A stretch of DNA of 64,000 bases from Thalia democratica (Eukaryota), in assembly GCA_965202585.1 (NCBI GenBank), contig OZ241826.1, forward strand, positions 15,562,001 to 15,626,000. Direction: 5' to 3'. Shown here in pieces: positions 4,601 to 64,000 of the stretch. Both the position numbers and the translations under genes were made by a program. The notes beneath the pieces were generated by a model. The model did no database searches and had not been told where the DNA came from. It was given only the letters and a program-made list of their open reading frames with translations. Numbering within the stretch: position 1 is the first letter of the stretch; every line of letters starts with the position of its first letter.

Positions 4601-7600
4601 GGTAAAGACAAGACAATAAGCTGGTTTTAATGGAAAGTGAGTTTGTCAAGTCTTAAGACTAAAACTTGGATGTAATTAAACTGTTGCCCGTACATGTAAT
4701 CAGGGGAAATTGAAAACTCAAGTTAACTTTGTAAATAGTGTCAATTTATCCTTCAACTAGAGCTACTAAACAGTTTTTTGATAAGCAACATTGCTTAAAT
4801 GTACTTTATCATTAGATTTACTTTAAGAAATAACTCAACATCGTTTTAGATTAAAACTAGCTTTTGAAAATTATAAAGAGGTTTAACACAATATTTATCA
4901 CAAAGTTTATAATACTAGTATTATGTCAAGTAACTAACATGTAACGCAATCGTACACATCGTGGGATTCAAGAACGCAGCATTCTTCAATCCATCTTGAC
5001 AAAGTTGTTTGGAGGTTTTCAGTGTACCCACCAGTGAGCATGGTTTCGTACAAGTTGTCCTATGAATTGTATATTTTTATTTTCAGTTATAATATCAGTT
5101 ATGTATGAAGAATTACTTTTATTGGTTTCAATGGCTTTCAAGTCTTTAAATTCAACCAAGAAAGTCTAGTCTATATACAAAAAAATAAATTAATGCATGT
5201 ACATCTAGGAATAATTAGTTGTTGGATGCAAGCTACTGAATACACGTTTGTTTAAACAAAAAATAAAACGAACAGGAAGCATGGATGCAAATATGGGATC
5301 GGGTAACTGCTGCACTTCCTGATTTACCAGATTTCTCATTTCTCCCACCAGATCGGCTCCCAAATACATCCCGTTTGCTGCCACTGGCTCCAATAATCTG
5401 TAATGGTATTCTAAAAGTTTTAAAAACAGTTTTATCCAAACTTTAAAGTACCTTTAAGAAAAACAAAAACTTAAACATGTGAAACACGGACTGGTTGAAA
5501 CTGATTGATTAAAAGGAAAAATATATTGTTAATTTTTATTAATTCAAACCTGTGAAAGACGGACTGGTTGGTTCTGTTTCTTCTCGGGTCGCCAGGCTGA
5601 GCGGCCCTCTGAATGAAAACTTCCTGATTCACCTCTTGGTTCGGGGTATTCACCTAGTAATAGTAAAATATATATAATCATTATATTTGTAATTATTGTG
5701 TTCACCTAGTTTGTCTATATCTCAAAATTTTATGTCAACATTTTTTTATTGATTTTTAAATCTACAGTATAATTAAATAAATAATAAATACACACATTTT
5801 TTAATAGTAGCATGAATATTATCAATCAAAATTAAAAAGTCTATTATTAATCTTATTTATACCAACCTGATTCTGTCTCATGGCCCCGATGTTCTGCCCC
5901 GCCCTCAAAACTCGTTGCGACCAGTTTTCGGGCGGTCCCCTGACGACGTTCTGCTGGTTGCCAGGCTGGTTGTTGGTTGCCAGGGAGTGCAGCAACATCT
6001 GGGGTCTGACCAGGAGTGGGTGCTGAGAGGTCACCCTTCCGCCTGATGTTCCTTGCACTGTAAATATAAATTAAAATATTAACCGTTTTATTTCTAAATT
6101 TGCTTCGCCTGTTGGCTGAGAAAAAGTTTACTGAGTTATATTTATCAACCAACCTTTTTAGTTGTACTCAGTTTATCAAGTAGAACAAATTATTTAAACA
6201 ATACAGAGAAATTAAAAAGTTGTACGTCAAAAAATAAACAAAACTTTAACAGACCTCTCTAATTTATTATTCTCTTTCCAGTGAGTTATTCAACTCTGGT
6301 TAAGTAATACTTAATATCCTAGTAAAACATACAACAATGTAAAAACAAAATAAAACAAATTCCGAACCGATTGAGATGGGGGTAGCGTCGTTCCTGCTCT
6401 GCGGCGTCGAAGTTCCGAATCCCTGCATGTCCAGGTAGGCGTGGGGGAATCCCCTGGTCCGAGAGTTGATCACGGGGATTATGTTGGGGTTCGCCTGGCC
6501 CCGGCTCATAGCTGCGGGTTCGTTATCGTCTATTACGTCACAAGTACAAAAAAAAAGTTATAATTTTATAAAATTAACTATTGTTTCAAAACTTAAAAAT
6601 TATTAGACTCTGAAGCCTTAGTTTTAAAAAAATACATATTTAAAAGAAAACTTTTTATTTCCATTACATGCATGTTTTGTATATGACAAAAACCCGAGTC
6701 TGATCTTGTTTATAAATAAATTTTCAATCATACAGCACTTCAGTGACCAATTCAAACTATTATCTATGACCTTATCAACCTCATTAAACAAAAACTAAAA
6801 TTAGTTAAACTTCAATATTTAATCTTTAATTTAATCATAAATTTCATAATCCACAACGAACCGTCGAGTTGTTCGCTGAAAAGGTCTTCCAGCTGCACGA
6901 ACAAATTGTTCTCCTGATCGCCCAGGTTGTAGTTGTTTATGACGTCATAGTTGTACACCTGGTCCATCTGCTCGTCCGAACCCAGCACGTCGTTGTCGTC
7001 ATCGTCGTCTTCTCCCTCCGTCTCGTCGCTCTGTGACGTCACAGTATTAAGTTAAACAAATTTTCAATTGTTTTAAAAAAGTAGGAGATATTTTACATAT
7101 GACTTATTTGTTTTGAACAAAAAACAGAAAATGTTTTGAAAGTTAACAGGCCATTTTTTAATTTAACTCAAACAAGACTTGAATGTTGGCAAACCAATAC
7201 TTATGCACTTCAACCAAAAATTTTTTAAAGCTTTTATAAATTTTCTGTAAGAGAAAAAATCTGGTCTGAGCGCGAGGCAATCATATTTACAAATTCTATA
7301 TTTTAACCTAATGTTCAACCAAATAATCAAGAAAAAATAAACTCACGTCATCATCCTCGTCGTCGTCTTCGACGTCGGTGACGTCATCGTCGTCCGCGTC
7401 ACCGCTGACGTCATCGTGAGGGTTGCCCTGGTGATAGACGACGAGATCTTCCAACGGTACCGCGTGGTGGTCCACTACTGAAATTAATTATTTGATTTAT
7501 TTGGTGATAGAAGACAAGACTTATCCATTATTTAAATTTATTTGTTTATTATATAAAATGTTTTTTTTTTATTATTTAGTGGTAAATGACGAGATCTTCC

Positions 7601-10600
7601 TTCGTTGTTTCTATTGAATAAACAATTTATTTTATTTTATCTTTATATTGGTGTTTGTTTAGTTTTCGGCACACTACTGAAAGCATACAGTGTTGCATAA
7701 GCCAATAAATAATTTGTTTTAAATAAATCATGCCCACTGGAAACTACTCAAACACATGAGCTATTTTGACTACCTGCATAAACAGTGCATGATACTCTAT
7801 AGAGAAGTTAGTTATGAGGAGCTACTTAATAAGTTTTATTAAAACATTAATATATACACAGATTGTTATTAAATGTTTTGACAAGCTGCGTAAACAATTG
7901 TAAAAAATTAAAAGATTGTTTTCTGCTTGGTCTTAATACGTGCAGCTTCTGCATTAATTACTTAATTATAAAAGGAAATAAAACTAAATATAAAAGTATC
8001 TACAAATGCCAGAAATCATAAACTAAAGTTCCTTATATGTTCTACCAAACACGCTTTATTTAAATGGATAGTCAGTTTTTGATTTTAATGCAAGTAGTTT
8101 TAATGCAAGTAGTTTTAAGTTTTGGGTAAAAAGCATTCGAAAATATAAATTAAAGGACAATGTCAAAATTGAATGTGATTTTCATTTTAATTTCACAATC
8201 ACAACTTGTCATAAATTTCTAAATTAAAACTCACACATTGAGTCGTTGTTGTCATTCGATTGAGATTGGTTCTCGTCAGCAACAACAACTGGATCCGTAT
8301 CCATATCATTTGAACCTGCTGTAATAAATATATATAAAAAGATTAATAAGTTTTATTTGTTTCTACAGTATCATAAGTGAATTTGAATTAAGAATCAAAT
8401 TTTATGTTAGTCTAGCTGTCATAAGTTCTTAAAAAGTGTTTGCAACTTTTAGGAATTTTAATAATCAATACTATTTAATTGTAAAAATATTAGCTTTTTT
8501 CAGTTTAAATATTAAGTAGCTTACATTTTCATTTGAACCTTCTGTAAATTTAATATAAAAAACATTACTACTACTCTATGTATTATTCAGATAGCTATTT
8601 AATATAAAATTGAAAATTCATACCAAACTAAGTGGTATAAATTTTTACGGTAAGTTTTTGTATTTTTTTATTTTATTTTTAATGCAAGATGTTAACTTTA
8701 AACGTTATATTTATTTTTTTATTCTAATAATATAATAATTACCTCTCATTAATGTAGGGGCGGCTGTGGTATTCTGTGAGCTGGAAAGTGCCTAAAAACA
8801 AATTAATAAAATAATCACAAGTTATTTATGAAACTTTAAAGTTATTAACCTCAAAAAAATTTATTAAATTTTTTAGCTTAATAAACGAAGTGTACATATT
8901 GTAAGAAAACTTATAAAACGTTTACTTTAATTGTTTAATAATGATGTTAAAGTAGTTATATTTGATTAAAATGGACTTCATAACTGTCTAAATACTATTT
9001 TTGAGCAGAAAAACTTAATAAATAAAAACTTTTTCTACTTTAATATTGTACACTTTTAATCAACCAACTTAAGTTCCATTAGTTTTCCAAAAATTACAAT
9101 TTAATTCACACGACAAAATAGGGGCTAGCAATTTTTTTAACTACAATATTTTTATTAACAAAAACAATTTTGTTTTTATTAAAATACTTGTTTTTTAATT
9201 GTGAAATCAAAAGATCATTTTTGTTCAAAAAATCGAAACAATTAGCGCGAGAGGTGTGGCGAAATTTTATTTATTTGCTGGAAAAGAATACACAAACAGG
9301 ATCAGCGCGCTGGCTGTGTGACGTCACAATCGTCGAGTGCTCGGCGGAGCGTGAAATTTCAGCTGGTTTTTCTGGAAAGTTCGCGATTTTTCCACGTCGC
9401 GCCGACATTTAATGCGTGTTTGAATTTCAACAAGTTTTTTTTTATTTATAGGTTTTGTTCTTTCGGTTTAACTCTTGAATTTACCAAGTTTTAAGTTTTT
9501 GAAAGTTTCGAATTATTGGTTGGACAAAAGTATCTATTAGTAATTTTAAATAATTCATCATTTAAAGCGTGTTAGAATTTCAACAAGCTTTGATTTTTTT
9601 TTGTTGAACTTTTTTTATAATAAATGTTAACATAAATAATAAAATGTTTGTTTTAATTTTTTTTTAATTTTTTAAAGTTTGTTTTTTTGGTTGAACAATT
9701 TTTTTAACTAATGCTAAGATAAACAAAAATATGTTTGTTTAAAATTTTAAATAAGTTATTTTAATTTATTTCAAATTTAAGTATCAAGTAAAAATGTTTT
9801 TTTTTGCGACAACATAGCTTTTGAAAAACATTTTTTTATACTAGAGTTTACTAAAACATTAATAATTTCATGAAGGCTTATTTTCGAAAAAAAGCGCGCT
9901 CAAACTAACGTTTAAACATTCATAAAGGAGAAAAACCAGTTATTTTAAATTCAAACACAAACTATTACACCATCACTTAAATTTTCTCATACAAAACTGT
10001 TGTGTTCAAACATTAATATTTTGTATTTAATCAAAAAACAAACATTTTCATCAGTTGAAGTGGACGGATTCTAAAAATTAACGTTAAAAACCTATAAAGG
10101 AAACAATATATAGTAATTAAACTGATTTTAGATTAACAAACGCACACAATATTGCATTACCAATAATTTTTATGTATACAATATTTAAAAAATAATATTT
10201 TACAAATAAACAAACATTCTCATCAGTTGAAGCAGATGGATTTTGCTGATTATTTTGATTTCCACTACCTTGCTTCTTGTCTTCCGTCGGTTTCTTCAAA
10301 GTCGACCAACGGCACAAGATCTGTTTGAATACTTATTTGTGATTTGAAATTTTTGAATACTTATTTGTAAAATTTATGTGTTTGAATATTTATTTGTAAA
10401 ATTGAAATGTTGAATACTTATTTGTAAAATTTATATGTTCACATCATTTTGATGGTAAATGATAGTAACTCGAGTTTTGACTTCGAGATTCTACAGCTAT
10501 CGATAGATTTTTTCATTTACAAACTGTATTTTTTTATTTAGGTTCTGCAAAATTGAGTAAATTACTAAAAAAAAGTTTATTCAATTATACATACTTTATC

Positions 10601-13600
10601 AAATAAATAAATAAATAAATAAATAAATATATATATATATATTCTTCTCCAGCTTTTTCATAGTAATTTTTTTTCTTTATCATAATCAACTTTTTCCTAG
10701 AACTTTATCAATAACACTGATAAGACATGAATGCTTACAAAAAAGGCTTTTAAAAATATTTTGTGCCGAAATAATAAACATTTACTTTAAAAATCATAAA
10801 TTTAACGATCCGGCGCAAACAAAAGACTCGGTCTTGCCGGCTCGTAAAAAACCGCGCCAAACTCACAAATACCGACTCGCTATTGGCCGAAAAGGATCGA
10901 CTCGACGCCGGTTAAATGTGCGGTGAAATCGTCGGAGCGTGTCGAAAATGAGTCACCGTGGAAACTCGAGTTTCCACTCGCGAATCGAAGTGACTCATCC
11001 GCTATTTCAACCTCCTTTCGCAACTCGCTTCCTTTTTGAAGAGGGCGCTTTGAGTACGAGTCGAACTGAAATTCTATTCAAATTTCCGTTCGCGTTGCAA
11101 AGAGTTGCATTAAATTTTCTGTTGATAATTAAATTTAGACATTTCCTTTTCTGTATTGAGAATTTATTGGAAATTTATTTATCACACCATATAAAACAAA
11201 CAGAATAATTTTATTTAAATTACCAGTGGCATTTTATGGCTCATTAGATTTTATAAGACTTGAATTAAATTTCCTGTTAGTAAATAGAATAAGGCATTTC
11301 CGTTTTAACTGTAATTTATTGGAAAATGGTTTATCACACCATATAAAACAAACAGAATTTTTTTTCGTTTAAATTATCAACAGCATTTTATGGCTCATTA
11401 GAGTTAAATTAATGAAATTAATTACAATAGAAATAAAAATGCGTATTGTTTTATATATTATATATAAGCACCTGTTGGAAATTGCAGGCATAATTAAGTT
11501 TTATATTTAACTTTTTTGATCACAAGTAAACATTATGAAAACAAAATTTTGAAGTGTGAGAAAAATTAATCTTAGATATTACTACATATACCTTTTTACT
11601 TCCTCAAAACTTCTAAACATTAGTGTTTTAATAAAATATTTCAGTGAGAGAATACCAGAATTGTGTGAAGGTTTAGAATTCATTTTTAATTTGATTCTTA
11701 ATTTTTTCAGTTATACAAGTTAAAATAAAACTTAAGTTGTATAGTTAGTTTTGATATCTAATTGTATTTTTCGTTTTGTATATAAATGAAACTACTTTGA
11801 GTAGAATATTTAGGTGGTTTCAATATGAAAGATAAGTATTTTATAAATAAACTTAAGCTCAAAGTCTAAGATTAATAGGCTTAAATGACTTAACCAACAA
11901 CAAGACCATTGAAACAATTGGTGATTTAGTTTTGAAAAGGTACAACTAATCTCTGCTTATAAACATGTCATCTTAAAAAGTTTTTGAGGTTCAAATAGTT
12001 TTACTAATTACCCAAACGAACAGTTTCCAAAGCTAGCAAATAATTAGACCGAAAGCTATAATCAAACCGATAAAAAAACAGTTTAAGGTAAATAAACCAT
12101 AGCTTGTAGTAGTTCAACCCAGATTAACTCAATGGACGAACAAGTGTAACGATTACGTATCTGTTATACTGAACAACTTGCTAGCTCTAACAATTTTGCC
12201 TGTAGAACCTATGTAGCTTAGTTAAATTTACAACCAATCAAAAAATGAGTGGGCAAGAGAACACATTTTTATCTCACCTCAACGGACTTTAAACAAAGCT
12301 AAATAAGGTATTTTACATCCAATAAAATATAAATTACCAAGTTAATAATCACAAAAACAGTGGAATCAACGCAGCATTGACAGTTTCCATAAAAACATAT
12401 TTCCAGTGGGTTCAACGCAGCGTTGACGGTTTCAGTTGATTATATATATATACACATAATAAAAAAAAATGAGATATCTGATGAGAACATTTAATAATAA
12501 AGTTGACGAAATCATTTAATTAAAACAATAACAAATAATAAAATACAAACCTCCAACGGATTAAGCGCGGCGTTGACGGTTTCTGCCATCTCACTTGACC
12601 CGAGGTCGATGTGGTGGATGACCTTGGCCAGGTCGGCGGCCAGCCCCCTCCTAACCATCAGCTTGGGCATGTACTGGTTGTTGTGCGGGTGGTTCCCCTG
12701 CATCTCCTGCTGCTCCACCCTCGACCTGATCCTGGGCACCTGCTTCACCGTCGTCACTTGGATGATGACGCTGCGTTTGGGTTTTTTTATATAAATATTT
12801 CAAATTTTTTTTTTGTGTTTTATAATAAAGGTATATTAAAATTTATAAGTTGATTCACCGTCGTCACTTGGATGATGACAAAAAAAATATTAAATTAATA
12901 AAACAACTTCTTAAAAACCGGTCCAAATACACATGTATTAGTTACTTGGATGATGACGCTGTTTGAAAGTTTTATTAATAAAAAAAAAACAATGAGATAC
13001 GAAAAATATCTTTTGATTTGCTCAAACACTTTTCTTTTTTAAATAACGTTTCACAAGTAGTTAAAGGAATTTTCGGCTTACAAAATGCATCCAAGATATC
13101 GTTAGGTTTAATTTTAAGAGAAAAGCCACGACATTACCAAATACACATTTTGAGTTTGTGGTTTACAGAAACAACTTAAATGCATTCTGCAATTCTCAAT
13201 TGAGCGTTTTTTCAGTCTAGACTTAAATATTAGCTCACAACTTGGAAAAATACTACACATTACTTTTCAACTAGTTTGCTATTCAATTTAGATAATTCAA
13301 ATGTTTCTTTGTTTCTTTTAACTACTAAAAAAACCAACCAAGTCAACTCTAATAATGCCTAGGCTACACTTTTAATTAACTTTAACTAGGAAAATTATTA
13401 AAAAAAAACATTAGTTTATTTAATATTTGACTACTTTTTTATTTACTAAAAACTCACCCAGTAAGTTCCAGCAATGCCCTCAGTTTCATGTGTTTCTTCT
13501 TACTTTCGGGGAATCCCACAGCCCTGTTGATGGCGCCCTTCAGCTCGTTGACGACCAGCAGGTGAACGTCCGTGACGTCGCTGCCTGGCAACGGGGCGCC

Positions 13601-16600
13601 GTGGAAGTAGGACTGGGCGACGGTTGCCACGACGACCCTGCATAGCAACGGGCAGTTGTCGTCCCAGAAGTCGTCGTCGAAGTTCTCGTCGGCGTCGCAA
13701 ACTTGTTTCTAATCGGGGGAATTTTTAACATTGATATTATTTGTTTTACTTTTTTATTTTTTTCTCATCAAAATTTTGTGATTTTTTGTGTGGACTATAA
13801 AAACAAGTTATTCACGATAAAAAAACTCGATTAAAAAATTAAAATACAGTTTGAACATTAGAAAATGAGTTGAAATAATTACTAAAGTTGTAAGTATTAA
13901 AAACCATTATTTATTAGCAGAACTTGTTTAAGATTTAAAACTCAGCAATATATACTTTTTTTAATCATAATTTATACAAACAATATACCTGATCGGACTT
14001 ATCGGATTTTTTGTCACCGCTTTCTTTTTTCATGTTTGTTTTCGGAACCAGCAAGTGATCCAGTAGTACTGACAAACACGATGAATCCTGTAATTAAATA
14101 ATTATGTTTTAATAAATACTTCAGTGCATTTTAATTAATCAAGTTTTTATTTTTATCCCCACAAAATTTTTTGTTCAAAGCTTATGTGTAAGCTTATTTT
14201 GAAAGTTTTGATGCAACAAAAGAAATAAATGAAGTAATGTTTTTTTTTTCGAAGAATGTTAAAAATGTAGTACAAAAGTCAGCATCAAATATTTATTTAC
14301 TGGTTACTTTGAAATTTATTTGTAAAAAGACTTAGTATATTGACTTATTTAATTTCAGAAGTTAAAACAATAAATATTAACCGGTCAGTTAAATATTAGT
14401 AATAAAATAAATATCAATAATTTTAATACATATTTAAAAATATTAGTATAGAGCAAGCTTCAATATCTACATACCTGACTAATAATAAAAGTATTGATAT
14501 ATTTATAACTACATACCTGCTTGATAATAGTAGTATTCGGATCGGCTTGGTACTGATGATTAGCCACTATAGAAGCTGTCACAGGGTAACTTTTCACTAT
14601 TTCCGCTATTATTCGCAATATTGAGGATTTTGATACCATTCGTTCGTCTGTATGATAATATACATTTCGTTTAGAATTTCAATTATTATATAACAATTAA
14701 TAACCATATATGACATAGTCAAAATAAACTGTACCATTTACACAACTGACATTTGTTAAATGTAGCAATTTTAGGATGCACATTTTTACAAACTTTGTGA
14801 TAATAAAATTAAGACTTAATAATAAAAATTATATTTTTCGTACTATTTTTTTTCTATGAGTAATAAAACTAACAATTACTACTGTCTTCAGGGGAACTAG
14901 TTTGCTGACGATGGGTCATTTTTGGGGTGACTGAAAGAATTGGGGTCCCCATGCTCGCTATTGGTCCGAAATGCTGGCCATATGGGTGCTGTGGATATAA
15001 TATTTAAGTTAGTTATATTTAATAAAACCGATAAGATTTTGTTTAAGTTTTACTATTTCATAAAAACAAACTTTTATTAAAATTTTCTTGATTGTTTTGA
15101 AAAATTATTCATTTTCCAAAAAATATAACATAAAAGTCAGTTACATTTTCACTTATTTTTCTTTTAATTTTTATAATCCAAAAAGCCTTAAAATTTTTCA
15201 TAAAACTAATAAAAATCAAGTTATGTAACATCAAATATTTCTAAACAGCTGCCGAAACAGTTAAAAACTCATTACAAAATGGCAACACTTTGACGATAAA
15301 ATGTGCAGATGTAATTGCTAGATATATGAAAATTAAATCCAATATAGTGATTGACGCCTTTTATTAATTTGACAACTGCTAACACTGCGTGTGCGCTTAA
15401 TTAAAAGAAAAATATTTTTTATAAATACAATGGCTTGTTTCAGTTTTAGTATTTGTAATCTTTTCTGGATTATGGTATCAACTGTTATGACACTGATTTG
15501 ACGATATGACAATTTTGTCTGGTACGTGATTATTTAGCTGTTGTGACGTCATAGCGTGTTTAATTTGATTTGCGGGCATTCGTCGTGATATGACACAACT
15601 TTACTTTTAAATATCACTTACTTACTTACTTCTAAAACATTTTAGCTTATATCAAAAAAATTAACTACTCACATAAAAATAACTCGGTTCTAAACGTAAC
15701 TCTTAGATTAAATTTTAGTAATTTTACAATTCAAGATATTTAAAATACCAACTTCAGACAACTTAATCCGGCTTACATGATAAGTTAACACCGCTAAAAG
15801 TTTTTCATAGAAAACTTATTGTTTCAAAAATACCTTAATTAATACTAAGTAATCCTACTTACACAAAATTGACCATGTTTGAGAAAATATTAGTTTTTCA
15901 GTTCCCGTTTCTTAAATTCATAGCTTAAACTTTTAACTAGTACTAAAATATAACTAATAAAAAAACTAGGTTGTTTAAAAATATTTCAATAAGAAATAAT
16001 CAAGTTACAACATTTCAGCAACTTCTTAATTTTTTTAATAAAAAATTCTAGTACATACACCTTTTAAATACTCTTAACCAGCGTATGTTATATGATTTTT
16101 ATTTTCAAAGCTGTACTACTTATTATTCAGTAGCGCATAAAAAAAGCCTCGATCAAAAAATACCAAGCATTTTTTTTTTACTAAAACATCAAACCAAACC
16201 TATTTACTTTTAGTTTAAATACAAACTAGCAAACTATTAAGTTAATTTCGAATGCGCAAACCAAACACAAACCTTCTTCCACTCTGAGCTGGGATCGTAC
16301 TTGGGGTACTTCTTCAGCACCAAAAAGTTGAGCAGCATTCTCATGGTTTCCACTGCGGGGTGTGACATGTCTTTATAATCGAACGGAGGCAAGGTGTTCT
16401 CGTTGGGTTGAGGGTCGCACTTGAGTTTCCTGGTTGCGTTGTTCTCAAGCAGCTCCTTCTCGGCGTGCTGGATCTGTGCGTCTGTTGTGGCTGGTTGTTA
16501 GAAAGACAAGAAGAAAAATTTACTAAAGGAGAAACTTTGTTTGTTGTGTTAGATAGGTTTCAAAAGGGTTCGGGGTTAAGAAAAAAATTTCTTCCAAAGG

Positions 16601-31008: not shown

Positions 31009-31042
<34 letters not shown>

Positions 31043-31069
31043 TAAATTTAATTTATTAAGTTAAATAAC

Positions 31070-31108
<39 letters not shown>

Positions 31109-52100: not shown

Positions 52101-55100
52101 CCAGGTTTGTAAGTATTGGTGTCAACGTCCATACTTAATATTAGACATAATTAAATTTGTATAATTAAATAAATAAACAATTTACCAGGTTTATAGGTAT
52201 TTGTGTCAACATACATACTTTCAGCTTATTGGATAAGTTTATATTAATAAACAACATACCAGGTTTGTAAGTATTGGTGTCAACATCCATACTCTCGGCT
52301 GACTGGATCGTGTCAACTTCCATTTCTGTGTGGCTTGTGCTACCGCTTGAACTGGCTTCGTCTTTATTTAAAATTATTATACATAATAAATAACTGTATG
52401 AATCAACATAATCTCATTGTTATTACGAACTAGCACCAAAGTTTGTACAGCAACTAGTAACCATTAACTATCATGTTTTTAATTTCCAAGATATCAAATG
52501 ATCCAAAAAAAACTATAACACTTGGAAAAATACATTAGTTAAAAAAGTGATTTACCTCAATTTAAGTAGGTATACTCAAAACAATATACTACAGGCTTAT
52601 TACATTACTTAAAAGCAACCTGAATTTTAGTATGTGGGTAGTCAAAAAGTGGTGTTAATAAAAATAACACCTTGCTTAGTAGGGAAGATTACCTGAGTTT
52701 TAATCAGAAAGATAGTAACTGCAAGGTAACGCTTAAATATCTATCTTACTAACTAGTTTTAAGTAACATAAGTAACAAACCTGAATCTCAAGTGGGTACA
52801 AGTAGGTGCTTATATGAATATATCAACTAAAAACATAACAAATCTATGTTTTTAGAAGGAAGATGAAAATTACGAGGTGATTTTTATATATGTAATACCA
52901 CCTTGTATATATAATACTTAGTACAGTAGATTACCTGAATTCTTAGTAGGAAGGTGGTAACTACAAGGTATTAAATGTAATTAACACCAAACTAAATTCT
53001 TAGTAGGAAGGTGCACTCTTGCAATTTTGTACGCTCGTGCAAATTTGTACGCTCGTGCAAATTTGACAGCTACCCACTTATATAAGTGACATACTAACAA
53101 TTCAGCAAACAAACCTGAACTCTTAGTAGGAAGGTGGTAACTACAAGGTGGCGTCTTCTTCCTGCAAATGTCGACCTCGTGTTTCAGCCTGTCGATGAAC
53201 ACCTGCAATCCGTTGGCGTTCTGGAAGGACTGCCACTCTATGTTGGTGATGAGGTCGATCACCCGCACCGCCCTCGTCACAAACTGTTTAATGTTGTCTA
53301 GGTAAACAGGCTGCGTGCAATAAAAAATAAAAAAAAACTCGGTTGGTTTAAATAATTTTAAAACATCTAATTTAAGTAATAAGAGTTTAGTTCGTACCCT
53401 TTCGATTTTCAAAAATGTATACAGAACTTTTTTTTAATTATAAACGAACTTAATTAAAAACTAAGTATTTTTATAACTTATCGTTTTCTGTTCTTAACTA
53501 CAGATTTTAAGTTAATATGATAAAAAACTTAAAGATGTACAACTACATCAAGTGTGTTAGATGTATAACTACCAACAACACCAAAACTAACAGTGGTTTG
53601 CTCCTGCTGGTCGCCCATGTTAGTGACAACTGATAACAGTGGCACCATCATGCCGCTGTGCACCAGGGAAATGCCTCCTTGCTCGAAAGAGGACAGGTGG
53701 TAGAGGAAAGAGAAGAGAGCCGTGGCGAAGCTGTGCGGAAATTCCGCCGATCCGCCTTCTGTGTGAGTTATTTTGCGTAATTTTATTGTTACCATATCGT
53801 TTTAGATGTAAATTGAAGCGATACATGTTAAATTTATTAATTATTATTCTACTTTCTATGAACAATTTCTATTATAACCATATATAAGTTATGCAAAAGT
53901 AATTATGTTTTTAATTTTTTGGCGAAGCTGTGCGGGAATTCCGCCGATCCGCCTTCTGTTGTGAATATCATTTTATGCGAAAAAAAGTATGAGATTACAT
54001 TTACAGCTATTAATGCTTGAGTATTTTCTTACTACATTAACTTATTTCAATTTTGATTGAAAAGTTTTGCAGATTAATTTAGATCATTTAACGATCTGTT
54101 TTTTTTTTTTTGAATAAAACTAGGTGAAAATCCACTAATCCGCCTTCTGTTATTCAGAGTACTTTGTAAATTTATGTCGTGTGTAAGATAACGCTGGCAA
54201 TTAATTAGCAATCGAATTTTATTTAGCGGTTAATCCTTCTTGGTATGTTAAGGGTCCGACCGGATCAAAAATCAACAAAGTTCGATCAGAATTCTACAAC
54301 ACATAAATACTGTGCACTTCTAAAACAGGACATTCTTATTCAAGTTATTTTCAATGTTTGAACTAGTGCTGTTTAATTTTTTAAGTGGGCTAATAACCAT
54401 GTTTAAAACAACAATCGTACTTACGTTTATCTGATTTGGTCATGTTTTCAATGCATCTCCTCACTAAGACAGGCAGGAATCCGTGATACTGGGACATACC
54501 TGTGAAAAAATTTATATTAAAAAAATAAGGAAAAAAAAAGTCAAAAAGGTATAGTTAATCAACCACATTGAGCCACATGACACAACATGGTAGATACCTA
54601 TTTATACTAGATTTTTATTATAACTATATAACTAATACTGTCATATTATTTACCAGGCACTGAAACATACCAGTTAAAAATAAAGATTTAAATAGCTAAT
54701 AAAAAAATAATGAGCTACATGGTAGAAACCATGAGACATACCCGCCATTAACTCATATTATTAATAACAATATAGATTAAAATATTACATTACTTCCAAC
54801 ATACCTGTCACGTCTATAATTGAAGACAGCCTCGAAGGTCTATCTCTGTTGTCCAAGTGGACTATGGATGTGAGGGTCCTTAAAGCGGCAGCTTTAATGT
54901 CCTGTTTATATTAATTTTAATTTTAAATATAAATTATTTTTAGAGTCCTTTACTTTAATTTTAGCACTAAGACATTGATCAACTATGGGTTTTTTTTGTT
55001 ATTCTAATTTATCAATTTAATTTAAACACCTTTACGAGCCAAAAAATTTTAAAAGGCTTACTTATGTGTTATTTTTGATAAATTATATAAGTGTTTTTAA

Positions 55101-61100: not shown

Positions 61101-62101
61101 TACATAAAACATTTACAGATAAAATAACAATTGAACTTAAATGTTCGGTTCAATGTTAAAGTTGTCAAATTTATTTTTTACTTAATAATAGCAAACTACT
61201 TTACAGTGTACTATTTTTTTGATCAAGTTATCCAACTGGGACTTTTTTAAGAACTTTTCAATGAGTAGCTTGCAAACATAACTTCATTGTAGCAGACAGG
61301 TGTGTATTGAAAAGTTTTAAATTAAACACTTAAGGATAAGCAATACGCATGTAGAACAAACTTTAAATATACCCGTTTTATTCATGTAAACTTCTTCCCT
61401 ACTAATTTATTTAGAAACAAAACAGACAAACCACATACAAGCGTACATTTCTCTAACTTCACCTAGAAAAATGTTTCTAACCTCTACATAGTTGCACAGG
61501 TAAAAAATACTTTATATTCAATTTAGTCCCTACATATATTGTATAAGATAAACCTGTTTACCTCTAAAGAGTTGTACAGATGCCTATTGAAGGAACATTT
61601 GATCAATAGTGATGTGAAACGGAGTTTAAGTTGCACTAGTGAGCAAATCTGATCTACTTAACTCAAAAATATACAGATACTAACCTCTACAGAGTTGTAA
61701 AGATGCCTACTGAACGAATACTCGATCAATAGTGGTGTGAAATGGAGAATGAGTTGCACCAGTGAGCAAATCTGATCTACTTAACTTAATAATATACAAA
61801 TACTAACTTCTACAGAGTTGTAAAGGTGTCTGCTGAACGATTACTCGATCAGCAAGGATGTTAAATGTAGGATGAGTTGCACCAGTGAGCAAATCTGATC
61901 TACTTAACTTAAAAATACATATTCTAAATACTAACCTCTACAGAGTTGTACAGGTGTCTGCTGAACGAATACTCGATCAGCAAGGATGTGAAATGGAGGA
62001 TCAGTTGCACTAGTGAACAAATCTGCTCGTCTGTGTTCACCCTCAACATCCACTTGGTGTCGTTGGTGGTGCTGCAAGCTCGCGCGAGGATGTCGTCGAA
62101 T
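1582..62101 (-). CDS. HUWE1: HUWE1-like HECT/UBA/WWE E3 ubiquitin ligase, partial multi-exon gene (64 coding exons in window; both ends outside window)
   Basis: Manual splicing gives an unbroken 8870-nt frame with GT-AG introns. Peptides match my recollection of human HUWE1: [142 protein letters not shown]. Confidence 0.95.
4172..4386 (-). CDS. HUWE1: HUWE1 exon 63
   Basis: [16 protein letters not shown]...; charged coiled segment. Confidence 0.88.
4939..5059 (-). CDS. HUWE1: HUWE1 exon 62
   Basis: [21 protein letters not shown] (HUWE1 RW.EEC.VL...DCV motif). Confidence 0.9.
5274..5397 (-). CDS. HUWE1: HUWE1 exon 61
   Basis: LLEPVAANG...FASMLP. Confidence 0.78.
5550..5653 (-). CDS. HUWE1: HUWE1 exon 60
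   Basis: VNTPNQE...NQSVFH(R). Confidence 0.8.
5867..6057 (-). CDS. HUWE1: HUWE1 exon 59
   Basis: [11 protein letters not shown]...MRQNQ. Confidence 0.85.
6368..6529 (-). CDS. HUWE1: HUWE1 exon 58
   Basis: [10 protein letters not shown]...PISI; phases fit. Confidence 0.8.
6862..7030 (-). CDS. HUWE1: HUWE1 exon 57 (acidic region)
   Basis: [12 protein letters not shown]...LFVQLEDLF. Confidence 0.85.
7347..7477 (-). CDS. HUWE1: HUWE1 exon 56 (acidic region)
   Basis: [11 protein letters not shown]...DDDEDDD. Confidence 0.85.
8235..8318 (-). CDS. HUWE1: HUWE1 exon 55
   Basis: GSNDMDTDP...NDSM; phases fit. Confidence 0.75.
8743..8791 (-). CDS. HUWE1: HUWE1 exon 54
   Basis: [16 protein letters not shown]; tag/gtaatt, phases fit. 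Confidence 0.72.
10216..10320 (-). CDS. HUWE1: HUWE1 exon 53
   Basis: ILCRW...NPSASTDEN. Confidence 0.83.
10321..10436. repeat. Four ~29-bp tandem units (ttgaatacttatttgtaaaatt) abutting the exon 53 acceptor
   Basis: Read directly from sequence. Confidence 0.85.
12551..12770 (-). CDS. HUWE1: HUWE1 exon 52
   Basis: [34 protein letters not shown]. Confidence 0.93.
13458..13708 (-). CDS. HUWE1: HUWE1 exon 51
   Basis: [31 protein letters not shown]. Confidence 0.9.
13989..14087 (-). CDS. HUWE1: HUWE1 exon 50
   Basis: [13 protein letters not shown]. Confidence 0.88.
14517..14647 (-). CDS. HUWE1: HUWE1 exon 49
   Basis: [17 protein letters not shown]. Confidence 0.9.
14880..14988 (-). CDS. HUWE1: HUWE1 exon 48
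   Basis: HPYGQHFGP...SSPEDS; phases fit. Confidence 0.75.
16273..16481 (-). CDS. HUWE1: HUWE1 exon 47
   Basis: [12 protein letters not shown]...[10 protein letters not shown]. Confidence 0.85.
16797..16989 (-). CDS. HUWE1: HUWE1 exon 46
   Basis: [22 protein letters not shown]. Confidence 0.9.
17368..17551 (-). CDS. HUWE1: HUWE1 exon 45
   Basis: LTR...[36 protein letters not shown]. Confidence 0.92.
17801..17928 (-). CDS. HUWE1: HUWE1 exon 44
   Basis: [26 protein letters not shown]. Confidence 0.9.
18117..18261 (-). CDS. HUWE1: HUWE1 exon 43 (WWE domain, second part)
   Basis: [29 protein letters not shown]. Confidence 0.94.
22851..22943 (-). mobile_element. Possible hAT-type MITE terminus
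   Basis: Minus strand begins CAGGGTTGCCAC followed by repeated (A)CCTGGAAAAA/AACCTGGAATT subterminal motifs; no partner TIR found. Confidence 0.4.
22979..23179 (-). CDS. HUWE1: HUWE1 exon 42 (WWE domain, first part)
   Basis: [10 protein letters not shown]...[15 protein letters not shown]...[12 protein letters not shown]. Confidence 0.94.
26143..26270 (-). CDS. HUWE1: HUWE1 exon 41
   Basis: [23 protein letters not shown]...ITP. Confidence 0.87.
26779..27066 (-). repeat. 82-bp tandem repeat: three intronic copies of the last 42 nt of exon 40 plus donor
   Basis: Units start at 26779, 26861, 26943 and 27025. Confidence 0.95.
27025..27177 (-). CDS. HUWE1: HUWE1 exon 40
   Basis: IDHSASTL...[14 protein letters not shown]. 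Confidence 0.88.
27636..27717 (-). CDS. HUWE1: HUWE1 exon 39
   Basis: [11 protein letters not shown]...; follows the VYR/CDL motif. Confidence 0.88.
27763..27943 (-). repeat. Three intronic copies of acceptor plus first ~35 nt of exon 39
   Basis: Direct alignment to 27681-27720. Confidence 0.93.
28681..28784 (-). CDS. HUWE1: HUWE1 exon 38
   Basis: [26 protein letters not shown](R). Confidence 0.87.
29051..29116 (-). CDS. HUWE1: HUWE1 exon 37
   Basis: [22 protein letters not shown]. Confidence 0.78.
29326..29358 (-). CDS. HUWE1: HUWE1 exon 36 (33-nt micro-exon, may be optional)
   Basis: tag|[11 protein letters not shown]|gtgagt; phase 0-0, so not required for frame. Confidence 0.6.
29636..29751 (-). 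CDS. HUWE1: HUWE1 exon 35
   Basis: EDDGRMIDP...DQYPLMM; phases fit. Confidence 0.78.
30091..30288 (-). CDS. HUWE1: HUWE1 exon 34
   Basis: acidic/Pro linker with QEGE(S/T)PPQD repeats; phases fit. Confidence 0.8.
30602..30824 (-). CDS. HUWE1: HUWE1 exon 33 (UBA domain and UIM-like helix)
   Basis: [15 protein letters not shown]...AVQHLL...[11 protein letters not shown]. Confidence 0.93.
31016..31140. repeat. (TA)n microsatellites and a 24-bp perfect inverted repeat
   Basis: 31045-31068 is the reverse complement of 31117-31140, with a (TA)n centre. Confidence 0.9.
31339..31564 (-). CDS. HUWE1: HUWE1 exon 32
   Basis: [10 protein letters not shown]...EENIQQ, leads into UBA. Confidence 0.85.
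31988..32032 (-). CDS. HUWE1: HUWE1 exon 31
   Basis: [14 protein letters not shown]; cag/gtaagt, phase 2-2. Confidence 0.75.
32126..32247 (-). CDS. HUWE1: HUWE1 exon 30
   Basis: [11 protein letters not shown]...; cag/gtcagt, phases fit. Confidence 0.75.
32538..32687 (-). CDS. HUWE1: HUWE1 exon 29
   Basis: AMQLLWD...[20 protein letters not shown]. Confidence 0.88.
33060..33244 (-). CDS. HUWE1: HUWE1 exon 28
   Basis: [27 protein letters not shown]; alternative in-frame acceptor would start at 33256. Confidence 0.88.
33677..33753 (-). CDS. HUWE1: HUWE1 exon 27
   Basis: [13 protein letters not shown]...EIP. Confidence 0.87.
33997..34119 (-). CDS. HUWE1: HUWE1 exon 26
   Basis: [30 protein letters not shown]. 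Confidence 0.93.
38887..39024 (-). CDS. HUWE1: HUWE1 exon 25
   Basis: [18 protein letters not shown]...PERL. Confidence 0.85.
39414..39577 (-). CDS. HUWE1: HUWE1 exon 24
   Basis: [28 protein letters not shown]. Confidence 0.9.
39840..39970 (-). CDS. HUWE1: HUWE1 exon 23
   Basis: [11 protein letters not shown]...RATKKLK; phases fit. Confidence 0.82.
40207..43273 (+). mobile_element. 5'-truncated non-LTR retrotransposon (CR1/L2-like LINE), antisense in HUWE1 intron 22
   Basis: Partial APE endonuclease ([44 protein letters not shown]) and RT. 3' UTR has a stem-loop (43216-43235), AATAAA and an (AAT)n tail. Candidate TSD atacc at 40202-40206 and 43274-43278. Clade assignment is from motif recall only. 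Confidence 0.88.
40520..42889 (+). CDS. LINE ORF2 (endonuclease C-terminal part plus reverse transcriptase), 789 aa open; frameshifted from upstream EN segment 40207-40490
   Basis: [66 protein letters not shown]. Confidence 0.93.
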   Translation: MPNIDWRIPSTDFNKPHECFLNFCTDNFLTQVIENPTHKNGNILDLIICNHFGLDRIISHSTNFPLTNTCDHNLLSLKIKIENKVVPIAKKVSYDYKKADFKSINDFLSKINWTSLFKNSENLQHFYDQFISSIQISIKRFVPIFSKNNKSKKYPSHIKKLLKEKANLYKKSKTNKSLLIKYKNKSKEYQLAVKKYNFEYENKFCKNPNLKKFYSYVKSKLKLNNSIHLLYDNDKNKTVTSDFEIATLFNINFQKVFKKDESYQSFKLPQKNCNKMQNFFITYEDIISSINHLKDKIIRTPENIPPYYIKHVIQSIIFPLSLIFNCSLELSDVPKQWKTSFIIPVHKKGNIHDALNYRPISLTSGFSRIYEHIVSVKILNHLFDNKLLTNKQFGFVPNRSSTIQLLTCLHSWLVPYLKNEFTKVVYTDIQKAFDSVSHKRLLKILNQYGLHESLIDWFDNFLNNRSQRVLINNTLSDSLTIYSGVPQGGVVGPLLFLIYINDICSNIDIKSELSLFADDAKIFSQSNTSLQLSLDNIYLWLKTRKLNLNPSKCKILTINKKESSPTDLLINNIKLPEIKVFKDLGIYNSKDLKWNEHINYLYKIAKTTCYQILKSFKTNSASILTKLFKTYVRPKLEFSTQIWSPHLKKDINKIESVQRSFTRHICNRCNISYTSYNDRMIKFGLKSLEYRRWEFDLLILYKIINGKYKSFFNQFFNFSQNKYQLRGNNLKIKCKHDFQNSQWQGAFFHRAKAMWNRLPQDIVSCERVEQFRLKLKRFDLNTINTSKIN
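43278..43380 (-). CDS. HUWE1: HUWE1 exon 22
   Basis: [22 protein letters not shown]; donor gtatta abuts LINE tail. Confidence 0.9.
43507..43560 (-). CDS. HUWE1: HUWE1 exon 21
   Basis: [18 protein letters not shown]. Confidence 0.85.
43874..44051 (-). CDS. HUWE1: HUWE1 exon 20
   Basis: PTCVLMRDQ...[17 protein letters not shown]. Confidence 0.88.
44344..44468 (-). CDS. HUWE1: HUWE1 exon 19
   Basis: SYQFQQRQ...[14 protein letters not shown]; phases fit. Confidence 0.8.
44897..45079 (-). CDS. HUWE1: HUWE1 exon 18
   Basis: [10 protein letters not shown]...[11 protein letters not shown]. Confidence 0.9.
46057..46253 (-). CDS. HUWE1: HUWE1 exon 17
   Basis: QSEEEDIR...[13 protein letters not shown]. 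Confidence 0.88.
48075..48217 (-). CDS. HUWE1: HUWE1 exon 16
   Basis: GC-rich open frame, phases fit (SSGKSVDTR...EENQED). Confidence 0.82.
48698..48842 (-). CDS. HUWE1: HUWE1 exon 15
   Basis: [17 protein letters not shown]...LGNDP. Confidence 0.92.
49119..49249 (-). CDS. HUWE1: HUWE1 exon 14
   Basis: ALCLNSTGL...[22 protein letters not shown]. Confidence 0.93.
50747..50900 (-). CDS. HUWE1: HUWE1 exon 13
   Basis: [14 protein letters not shown]...[14 protein letters not shown]. Confidence 0.93.
51223..51414 (-). CDS. HUWE1: HUWE1 exon 12
   Basis: [22 protein letters not shown]...[13 protein letters not shown]. Confidence 0.93.
52020..52225 (-). repeat. Three intronic copies of the exon 11 3' end plus donor
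   Basis: 52020-52065, 52102-52135 and 52186-52225 align to 52260-52305. Confidence 0.92.
52260..52361 (-). CDS. HUWE1: HUWE1 exon 11
   Basis: linker [22 protein letters not shown]; phase 1-1 fits neighbours; aag acceptor. Confidence 0.8.
53115..53310 (-). CDS. HUWE1: HUWE1 exon 10
   Basis: [14 protein letters not shown]...[11 protein letters not shown]. Confidence 0.92.
53592..53758 (-). CDS. HUWE1: HUWE1 exon 9
   Basis: [20 protein letters not shown]. Confidence 0.92.
54425..54499 (-). CDS. HUWE1: HUWE1 exon 8
   Basis: [19 protein letters not shown]. Confidence 0.92.
54805..54901 (-). CDS. HUWE1: HUWE1 exon 7
   Basis: [17 protein letters not shown]...LSSIIDVT. Confidence 0.92.
55129..55270 (-). 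CDS. HUWE1: HUWE1 exon 6
   Basis: [16 protein letters not shown]...[14 protein letters not shown]. Confidence 0.93.
55541..55668 (-). CDS. HUWE1: HUWE1 exon 5
   Basis: [12 protein letters not shown]...[13 protein letters not shown]. Confidence 0.9.
55892..55987 (-). CDS. HUWE1: HUWE1 exon 4
   Basis: [12 protein letters not shown]...; aag acceptor (in-frame alternative 21 nt upstream)/gtgagt. Confidence 0.85.
56383..56445 (-). CDS. HUWE1: HUWE1 exon 3
   Basis: [21 protein letters not shown]; cag/gtaagt. Confidence 0.92.
60466..60618 (-). CDS. HUWE1: HUWE1 exon 2
   Basis: HLTALLSS...[14 protein letters not shown]...LSYLGE; cag/gtttgt. Confidence 0.93.
61562..62025 (-). repeat. Tandem array (about 123-128 bp period): three intronic copies of the last 90 nt of exon 1 plus donor
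   Basis: Direct alignment of 61562-61651, 61685-61774 and 61808-61897 to 61936-62025. Confidence 0.95.
61936..62101 (-). CDS. HUWE1: HUWE1 exon 1 (window numbering)
   Basis: [10 protein letters not shown]...[16 protein letters not shown]; cag/gttagt. Confidence 0.93.
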
Positions 62102-64000
62102 CTGTGACGTCATAATAGTCATTTATTTATATATTATTATTTACCGGTTTATTTACTAACATTTATTGACTTATTTTTTGTTATTTATGGTTTTAATTAT
62201 TACAATTTATTATTTAATTTATTTTCAGATCTGTTTAATATCTATTAATTTATTACTACTATTTATTTACTTATGGTTTTTTTTTGTTACAATTTTATTT
62301 ATAATTAATTAATGTTTGCGGCACAGCAAGCTGGTGCAAGGATGTGGTTGGTGAGTGACAATTCAACATTTTTTATTCATTTCAATATGCTATTACATTG
62401 TTAATATTTTAGCAGTTAAAAATATTAAGTAAGTTGTTAAATATGATCTGTTAAAAATATGGTTTTTTATTTGTTTTATTACAATATATAAAAATAAAAA
62501 TTGAGAAAAAGGTCCAGTCTATAACAGGCTTCAAAGCCAGCCAGCCAGCCAGCTTAAATATTAATAACAGTCATTTTGTTTTCACCCAGTATATTTTAGA
62601 ACAACTTTATATAATTTTTTATTTTGGCTCACATGTGGCAATGTTTTATATGTAATGTGGCCAACTTATTGAAAATGGACTTTAGCAAGCTGGTCTACTA
62701 TTTTTAAGCTTAGAAAAAATATTAGTATGAACTATTATATGAAAATGTTAGTTTTAAATTAGAAATATTTGTTTCACAGGCCAGACGTTTGAATTTTTGA
62801 TGTTTTTTTTAACTACTTGATAACTAAAATACTTAAAAGTATTTGAAATAAAGAAAATAAAGAAATATTTGGTAAAAGCCAGGACAAGCGTAATATTAAT
62901 TTATCATAAATTTACTAAACTTCTCACAGATTATTTTATCAGCTCTTTGTATGTTGACTGTGTTTTATAAAAAATCAAGCCTGTATTGTTTTGTAAGATT
63001 CTTTTTTGCACATTTATATTTATAACTTACACCGCACAAAGTTTTTCAGGTGCAAAAAAAAAGTTCCTCAACTTATGACTGTACCTATTTTTACACAAAA
63101 AGTCAAACATAGTCGGTAATTTTTTATTATGTATCAGCGACATCCAATAATTAACCAAAGTAAATCAGTGATAACTTTTTTCTTCAATTAAAATTTGTTA
63201 AATATAAATTTCATAATTTTAGACCAAAGAGGTTAAATTTTATTTTTCACAAGTTGTTCATGTTCTTAATACTCTTTTAATAGCTACCAGCTAGTTTAAC
63301 AGTTTAAATTAAGAATCAGGAAGGTTCAATGAGTGCTAGTTTCATGATTTAACCCAAGTTGTTGTTATTGATATTATAATATTTATAAAATGATGATGAA
63401 CATGTATCTAATTGAATAACATTCAGTGTGTTTAAGTTTTATAATTGCTGATTAAAATAATTATATTTTTAAGCACACTTTTTTAAAGGCTGTAGTAGAC
63501 AAGTTTGTTAACAATAAATAATAGAAAGCTTTATAGTATAGCAACATATTTTACATAATTGAAAAAATAACCACAAGTAAAACATATGTTTTTAGATTAA
63601 ATTCAGTTAGGCTTTTAAAAATAAGTAATTGTCAATTATCTTTGTTAAAGCAAATTTAAAATTATCATAACTAAATTTCATTGCATTTAACAATCTTAGA
63701 CTTGTCTATATTTAATTAATATGTGTTTGTAATAATAAAAATTAAAGCAAAACTTATACTTAAAACCATCATTAATTAATATTTAAAAATATTATTTATA
63801 TTAAAAAAATAAACTTTTAAAGATAAACACAAATTAAATGTTTCAAAGTTAGCTATGAAAAGTTGATACTCTTGTTGCAAAGCTTTTTGTTTTTTAAATT
63901 ATACTTTTTTGTATTTTGCTACAATAATTGTCTACTTTTTTAAGCAGTATCATACTTTTTATTTGACATTTATTATTTTCAACAATAATGACAGAAAGTT

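Follow-up and report, generated by a model that had tools for sequence, protein, structure and literature searches.

Several described systems set partial copies of a coding segment beside the segment itself, and they offer the closest comparisons for the 64-kb window of Thalia democratica DNA analysed here (assembly GCA_965202585.1, contig OZ241826.1, positions 15,562,001 to 15,626,000; the window is this whole stretch, and all coordinates below are counted within it). The window carries a HUWE1-like gene whose exon ends, together with their splice sites, recur in the adjacent introns as copies that differ from the exons mostly at silent sites. Internal (partial) gene duplications spanning an exon-intron junction were reportedly treated by Gao and Lynch in 2009. 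Their likeness to our locus is close: in both, the intron next to an exon holds a same-strand tandem copy of the exon's end and splice site, splicing continues at the original site and leaves the mRNA as it was, and the duplicated site could serve as an alternative. Internal duplications across exon-intron junctions are discussed in two articles in connection with intron gain, intron sliding and duplicated splice sites (PMC2891723, PMC4974935). What differs here is that a quarter of one gene's exon edges is affected, often by arrays of three or four units, and that the copies show a strong excess of silent differences.

The human minisatellites MS32 and MS31A, according to work ascribed to Jeffreys and colleagues in 1994, are said to mutate by inter-allelic, polar unequal exchange or conversion. 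Our arrays share with them tandem units of tens to about 120 nt, mosaic variant units and a proposed growth from the other allele at one end; they differ in that the end unit is a coding exon, so that selection filters that position, and in that inter-allelic exchange is here something we infer. Arrays of silent pseudogenes act as donors in gene conversion, as in the pseudo-V genes of chicken immunoglobulin and in the conversion of CYP21A2 by CYP21A1P. In such arrays, as in ours, unexpressed partial copies adjoin a functional segment and resemble it closely enough for recombination between the two. Unlike them, our copies encode the same protein and thus offer no diversity, they show no sign of programmed conversion or maintenance, and orthologous copies decay neutrally.

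Tandem exon duplication, which Kondrashov and Koonin in 2001 and Letunic and colleagues in 2002 are said to have linked to mutually exclusive or cassette exons, also yields a local tandem copy of coding sequence with splice signals; our units, in contrast, comprise exon ends, usually with one splice site, have no frame preference and are absent from RNA contigs. Finally, false segmental duplications from unmerged haplotypes in heterozygous assemblies were reportedly described by Kelley and Salzberg in 2010. The resemblance lies in adjacent copies, allele-like and mostly silent differences and a very heterozygous sample, whereas here the copies are also seen in read-level contigs and in another organism, as units of 70-130 nt in up to four graded steps. 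The literature searched yielded junction-spanning duplications, but intronic exon-edge copies with a silent bias were not found described in it; the density of the copies and their systematic silent-site signature seem to be new.

Exon-edge copies along a HUWE1-like gene

The window has a G+C content of 29% and contains no gaps. Pfam matches of translated exons place the DUF908, DUF913, UBA and WWE domains on the minus strand, in N-to-C order from high to low coordinates; the DUF908 match is weak (E=0.0045, under the curated cut-off). The predicted order DUF908-DUF913-UBA-WWE is that of the N-terminal three-quarters of a HUWE1-type ligase. No HECT domain was seen among the scanned exons, and no search aimed at HECT was made. 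The gene model was built de novo, by a dynamic programme on codon, splice-site and phase information and without a full-length homologue; AT-rich exons may be absent from it, and its numbering of exons differs from that in an earlier reading of this DNA made from its letters (hereafter the sequence-only reading). The three model junctions that could be checked (61936>60618, 27025>26270 and 26143>23179) agree exactly with RNA contigs.

5550-62101, minus strand: part of the HUWE1-like gene that lies inside the window, with 57 confident exons (Pfam order, de novo model, RNA contig junctions)

Four sequence samples were compared with the window: reads of the sequenced sample (X1), a separate study of another organism, B (X3), the RNA contigs (X4) and a marine metagenome (X5). 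The reference lineage is called A; L001 is a related lineage from a metagenome, and L002-L004 are more distant relatives from metagenomes.

We aligned the first or last 90 nt of each confident exon, extended by 30 nt of intron, locally against the adjacent intron. Same-strand copies were found for 30 of 114 exon edges at a score of at least 28 and for 28 of 114 at a score of at least 30, whereas the same queries against distant introns gave 0.2 edges and 0 edges, respectively. Altogether there are 49 copies from 25 exons, with acceptor copies upstream and donor copies downstream of their exon, at offsets of 28 to 454 nt plus one at 1276 nt. The sequence-only reading had proposed edge copies for about 25 exons in just this arrangement, and both the number, which lies far above chance, and the layout, over all 49 copies, are confirmed. 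The junction itself is spanned by 39 copies, and the splice dinucleotide is retained in nearly all of them (GT in 22 of 23 donor copies, AG in 15 of 16 acceptor copies). The intron parts of the copies align to the local flank with 75 mismatches in 784 positions. Offsets modulo three are distributed as 12/21/16 among the 49 copies, which indicates no in-frame preference.

The exons and copies are as follows; pairs of numbers are silent and replacement differences from the exon.

61936-62101, minus strand: real exon 2 (exon 1 of the sequence-only reading), the last 30 codons of which are the source of an array; an X4 RNA contig ends the exon at 61936 and continues at 60618
61477-61897, minus strand: donor-side array of exon 2, four copies at 61779-61897, 61660-61774, 61560-61651 and 61477-61501 (6:2 with one stop among them, 12:1, 12:6 and 0:2, from nearest the exon outward); each unit, about 123 nt long, joins some 95 nt of exon end to GTTAGT and the first part of the intron; reproduced without a difference by X1 contigs, also in X3 and X5
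53592-54150, minus strand: exon 53592-53758 with acceptor copies at 53920-53964 and 54126-54150 (1:0 and 1:3)
52933-53310, minus strand: exon 53115-53310, the start of DUF913, with donor copies at 52988-53013 and 52933-52969 and weaker copies at about 52842 and 52691
52009-52361, minus strand: exon 52260-52361 with donor copies at 52158-52226, 52083-52135 and 52009-52068 (5:1, 1:0 and 10:3), GT kept in all three
45882-46253, minus strand: exon 46057-46253 with a donor copy at 45882-45951 (5:1)
33997-34218, minus strand: exon 33997-34119 with an acceptor copy at 34156-34218 in a 95-nt unit (7/7 silent, including two switches of Leu codon family)
27636-27950, minus strand: exon 27636-27717 with stacked acceptor copies at 27763-27826, 27834-27897 and 27907-27950 (2:1, 4:0 and 1:0), each with the AG acceptor followed by 34-36 nt from the start of the exon; an X1 contig over 27663-27985 has 0 differences
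26776-27273, minus strand: exon 27025-27177 with a donor array at 26913-26986, 26831-26904 and 26776-26822 (period 82 nt; 10 silent, 0 replacement) and an acceptor copy at 27213-27273; splicing in the RNA contig is at donor 27025 and acceptor 27177
22745-23436, minus strand: WWE-domain exon 22969-23179 with a donor copy at 22745-22788 and an acceptor copy at 23405-23436 (local alignment, Pfam)
13330-13365, minus strand: weak, frame-broken copy of the tail of exon 13458-13708, below the detection threshold, with a frame-breaking deletion
12345-12982, minus strand: exon 12551-12770 with donor copies at 12389-12433 (7/7 silent) and 12345-12387 (more decayed) and acceptor copies at 12851-12879 and 12941-12982
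10024-10320, minus strand: exon 10216-10320 with a donor copy at 10024-10070 (3:1), which contains a stretch of 27 nt flanked by AG and GT, the micro-exon candidate of the sequence-only reading

The single counts on which the sequence-only reading was built were reproduced: 7/7 silent at 34156-34218 and at 12389-12433, 5/6 at 45882-45951, 2/2, 4/4 and 4/4 in the array at 26776-26986, and 13 changes with one replacement at 61660-61774.

Local duplication is not peculiar to exon edges. At a score of at least 32, a local copy was found for 28 of 114 exon edges and, in the same design, for 4 of 28 purely intronic pseudo-edges; exon edges are thus not clearly richer in local duplicates than intron interiors, and the idea of exon edges as special duplication sites is not borne out. 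Same-strand self-matches of at least 40 bits number 44 within 1.5 kb, against 0-1 per farther 1.5-kb bin, and short local duplication is very common in this genome; some tandem arrays lie wholly within introns. In L001, the homologue of exon 13458-13708 is followed by two tail copies that belong to this lineage, at 417-450 and 533-553 (+117 and +233 nt); they too differ mostly silently from their exon, the first by about 5 silent and 3 replacement changes, the second by 3 and 3-4 with a stop. The copying habit is therefore common to that lineage. No local duplications were found near the homologous exon in L002-L004.

The sample is very heterozygous, which is the setting for false duplications, and two haplotypes might have been placed in tandem by the assembler. 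We consider this scarcely credible. Independent X1 read-derived contigs tile the arrays over 27130-27985 and 61440-62116 with 0 differences, organism B and the marine metagenome carry the exon-2 array with substitutions of their own, and up to four graded units exceed what two haplotypes could supply.

Silent differences between copies and exons

The exon parts of the 49 copies contain 150 mismatches, which fall on the three codon positions as 23/17/110; 112 are silent, 36 are replacements and 2 create stops. When each event is counted once, 88 silent and 35 replacement changes remain. Pooled over all copies, the divergence between copy and exon is 0.40 at silent sites (pS) and 0.039 at replacement sites (pN), with a ratio of replacement to silent rates (dN/dS) of about 0.07 by the Nei-Gojobori method. 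A neutral copy lying beside an exon that accepts silent changes alone would be expected to show a silent share of 36% under uniform mutation, or of 41% under an empirical mutation spectrum taken from the intron portions of these alignments. We observed 76% when all copies were counted and 72% when each event was counted once (p from 1e-11 to 1e-22; against the 41% expectation, p=1e-17 and 7e-12, respectively). Base composition covers only part of this excess. Since the observed share so exceeds the expected one, the silent excess is the footprint of protein-level purifying selection. It survives the pooling of every copy (112:36, or 88:35 as unique events) and is not confined to the best examples. 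The sequence-only reading had named beforehand two outcomes that would speak against it, absence of the copies from reads and a neutral pooled dN/dS; the copies are present in read-derived contigs, and the pooled ratio is not that of neutral copies.

A sceptic might hold that there is nothing to explain, the copies being neutral duplicates of the same lineage whose silent excess reflects composition, silent drift of the exon and selective reporting. Third positions of the exons are indeed 56% G/C in an intron background of about 21% G/C, and G/C sites change most; moreover, divergence between lineages is 3-4 times as fast in exon-derived sequence as in the A/T-rich flank. The expectation of 41% already takes the empirical spectrum into account, yet falls well short of the observed shares. 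The exon-2 array provides two further points against this view. By a rough estimate, about 9 exon-lineage silent changes relative to the second copy predict about 20 replacements, and 1 is seen; the third copy, before the split of lineages A and B, had accumulated 0 replacements and at least 10 silent differences. Contradicted by the silent share and by the comparisons of orthologous copies and of private with shared changes given below, this explanation is very improbable.

Decay of the copies within introns and the source of their divergence

Because the exon-2 array exists in both lineages, any difference between orthologous copies must have arisen in the intronic state. Between A and B/X5, the orthologous copies have accumulated 13 replacement changes and 6 silent ones, while the real exon beside them shows 8 silent changes and no replacement (Fisher p=0.002). 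This between-lineage comparison rests on one array and 19 differences; a comparison within the window covers four arrays of three copies and points the same way. There, 10 silent and 14 replacement changes are confined to one copy, the differences that at least two copies have in common are 15 silent and 0 replacement, and the real exon has 3 silent and 0 replacement states of its own. Replacement changes and stops occur only in single copies and are never shared; the copies contain two in-frame stops, and one has a frame-breaking deletion. As far as these comparisons reach, the copies decay neutrally in the intronic state, and the replacement changes are young, whereas the silent differences are old. 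The sequence-only reading had concluded that the copies themselves have been under protein-level selection. The footprint of selection is real, but selection acted before the copies became intronic.

The splice signals of the copies might suggest a hidden or former coding use, in which they are the ends of cassette or alternative exons that are translated now or were until recently. Four copies are in frame between AG and GT (61685-61771, 87 nt; 45906-45941, 36 nt; 22751-22780, 30 nt; 10044-10070, 27 nt) and were called as exons by a permissive run of the exon finder, from which we removed them by hand; the high retention of splice dinucleotides, given above, also fits such use. On the other hand, neither offsets nor unit lengths favour multiples of three, the second splice site is absent from most copies, and stops and a frame-breaking deletion are present. 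The RNA contigs, which drop rare isoforms, join only real splice sites and skip the copies at the three junctions available; at the contig level, RNA depth is 0 over 26800-26999, about 0.9 over 27800-27999 and 0 over 61440-61922. Together with the neutral decay of the orthologous copies, these observations make coding use quite improbable, and the hidden-exon option of the sequence-only reading is not supported. Recursive splicing was considered as well and was rejected, as the copies do not start with GT behind the AG.

If the copies decay neutrally once they are intronic, their silent excess requires another source, and the third exon-2 copy is informative in this regard. Its six replacement changes in the reference are absent from B/X5, which hold the exon's letter at each of these sites, while about 10-12 silent differences, in a codon-by-codon reading, are common to both lineages. 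It follows that, at the A/B split, this copy still encoded the exact peptide of the exon and was already heavily diverged silently. A neutral copy drifting while the exon gains about 10 silent changes would, by a rough estimate, be expected to acquire about 18-20 replacements; 0-1 are seen. A simple time series from a single exon lineage was rejected on this ground. Hypermutable silent sites in the real exon were rejected as well: the silent difference between A and B in the real exon is about 22-25%, against 13-17% in neutral exon-derived sequence, so that the silent rate is only about 1.5 times the neutral one. With single-lineage drift and hypermutability both failing, most of the path between copy and exon was thus passed in the state of functional exon.

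Sequences other than the reference exon do carry some of the copies' silent states. In the exon-2 tails, the copies hold the B/X5 state at 4 of the 6 sites that differ between A and B/X5, and 4 of the 7 silent differences of the donor copy of exon 12551-12770 match the real exon of L001. The sequenced sample itself contains two haplotypes at comparable depth (45 and 32) in 22600-28599. One contig matches the reference exactly, whereas the other has 49 mismatches and 33 gap letters in 460 nt, mostly of intron. The two haplotypes are about 10% apart in introns, with many insertions and deletions, and the second shares alleles with X3 and X5; at the exon-2 stretch, about 35 kb away, the reference type alone was found in X1. 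This pattern suggests extreme diversity with recombination, or hybrid ancestry. In the tail of exon 27025-27177, the second haplotype differs by three silent letters, including a double-step change of a Leu codon from CTT to TTG. All allelic differences inside real exons are silent among the differences listed, which cover few codons in few exons and place the silent divergence between sampled haplotypes at about 0.08-0.25. Units within an array also combine their variants as a mosaic: in the array at about 27.7 kb, att/ata, tgt/tgc and gat/gac occur in four-gamete combinations. Two scans of metagenome contigs with degenerate patterns gave no match.

We favour, with modest confidence, the explanation that the copies are junction-spanning tandem duplicates that sampled different functional alleles through recombination or unequal exchange. 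Short tandem duplications with units of about 70-130 nt, which are common throughout the introns, would by chance span an exon-intron junction and would be tolerated; the first donor or last acceptor, the original splice site, would stay in use, and hence the mRNA would be unchanged. Once intronic, the copies would decay neutrally, and their silent excess would be inherited from their time as functional exon under purifying selection. In an extremely diverse species with recombining haplotypes, a copy and the neighbouring exon could trace to different functional alleles, because high diversity and recombination over about 100 bp mean that the two need not share one allele. Different alleles may have become neighbours in one of three ways: duplication or array growth may have used the homologue, by unequal exchange or templated repair; later crossing-over may have set another allele's exon beside the copy; or units may have been added singly from the functional position. 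Unequal exchange between homologues within an existing array would also insert units from the functional exon of the other allele. The mosaic of silent variants among units fits such a sampling of recombining alleles. Among the three options offered by the sequence-only reading, capture from a divergent allele fits best.

A stronger form of exchange is also conceivable, in which the arrays act as a reservoir: units taken from the functional exon of the homologue move into and out of functional position by unequal crossing-over or gene conversion, replacement-bearing units cannot return, and protein-intact units feed silent variation back into the exon edge. The strictly silent nature of the shared differences (15 silent, 0 replacement), the mosaic units and the CTT to TTG double step, which stands like a short patch in an otherwise near-identical exon tail, would fit such traffic. 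It could also accommodate a silent divergence of the copies in excess of that between sampled alleles, and the apparent conservation of one copy between the reference and L001. Yet the orthologous copies have diverged mainly by replacement, and a stop and a Phe-to-Leu change are already present in the exon-2 copy nearest the exon. If exchange were so frequent as to purge replacements, silent sites should be homogenised too, but they are near saturation; selection on the copies through frequent conversion was rejected for the same reason. In addition, the silent states of the reference donor array at 27 kb are not those of the second haplotype's exon tail. We therefore regard arrays coupled to their exon by recombination under protein-level selection as rather unlikely. 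The sequence-only reading's silent backup cassettes survive to the extent that exchange is possible in array turnover; their neutral decay and stops indicate that they are not maintained as such.

Alternatively, introgression or ectopic templated repair may have brought the divergent copies in from a non-allelic donor, whether a paralogue, a homoeologue or the copy of another species. Many copies have a pS of 0.5-1.0, as large as that between the reference and L001 (0.28-0.52), and X1 carries alleles typical of organism B. Against this, the intron parts of the units are about 90% identical to the local flank, whereas L001 introns are mostly unalignable; no second HUWE1-like copy exists inside the window; and arrays of several copies would require several different donors. 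We regard a donor of this kind as improbable.

The reading that we favour, in which the copies sampled different functional alleles, does not account for everything. At 0.40, the pooled silent divergence exceeds that measured between haplotypes, on few codons, by a factor of about 1.5-3, and so deep allele lineages or an additional process would be needed. At third positions, pairs with G/C in the exon and A/T in the copy outnumber the reverse by 62 to 31, an asymmetry of which neutral decay, by a rough estimate, covers only part. A copy of the tail of exon 13458-13708 seems to be common to the reference and L001 (about 20 of 22 letters, by eye) and is better kept than the surrounding, unalignable intron, which hints at constraint or at exchange among copies. 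The small size of the orthologous comparison, noted above, belongs with these misfits, and it is because of them that we keep some weight on exchange and on non-allelic donors.

If sampling of functional alleles is correct, then the copies are dated snapshots of those alleles, in which replacement changes time the residence in the intron and silent differences gauge the depth of the allele genealogy; a single assembly would thereby record ancestral polymorphism, recombination and duplication rates in an animal genome that ranks among the most diverse observed. If the arrays are instead coupled to their exons by recombination, introns would archive old functional alleles, and the arrays would feed multi-letter patches, mostly silent and occasionally replacement, into exon edges; exchange between units and the exon edge would be a new mutational input to coding sequence, and a housekeeping gene would thereby gain clustered synonymous changes from a source not described before. 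A more general caution, above all for hyperdiverse species, is that a low dN/dS between a sequence and its duplicate is no proof of selection on the duplicate. With its stacks of intact decoy splice sites, this genome also forms a natural test set for how the spliceosome chooses the first donor and the last acceptor.

Other features of the gene and window

Throughout the gene, donor sites follow the consensus AG|GT(T/A)(T/A)GT, in which T is commoner than A at +3, and acceptor sites follow ACAG|, lacking a clear polypyrimidine tract. A protein search with the WWE exon, a search of PDB with one exon and a search of the window against Rfam gave no match. At 4172-4386 on the minus strand, downstream of the gene end given by the sequence-only reading, lies an exon-like open reading frame (ORF) with a high coding score and a low-complexity stretch rich in Lys and Glu; it has no Pfam match and may be further HUWE1 sequence or part of a neighbouring gene.

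Within the introns, a block of about 100 nt at about 13150-13240 on the minus strand is nearly identical to positions of about 600-700 in L001, while the rest of that intron is unalignable. Rfam gave no match for the block; a small RNA as yet unannotated, or an element with a role in splicing or regulation, may lie here. At 22800-22999 and 23600-23799, contig depth exceeds the local level by factors of hundreds to thousands in each of the four runs, RNA included, and these intronic segments are probably high-copy repeats or fragments of mobile elements. The only long ORF of the window, at 40520-42889 on the plus strand, is intact and encodes 789 aa with an RVT_1 match (E=3e-32); it is the reverse transcriptase of a non-LTR (long terminal repeat) retrotransposon, lies in an intron of the HUWE1-like gene on the opposite strand, and has as its best relatives non-LTR-type proteins that are 44-47% identical.

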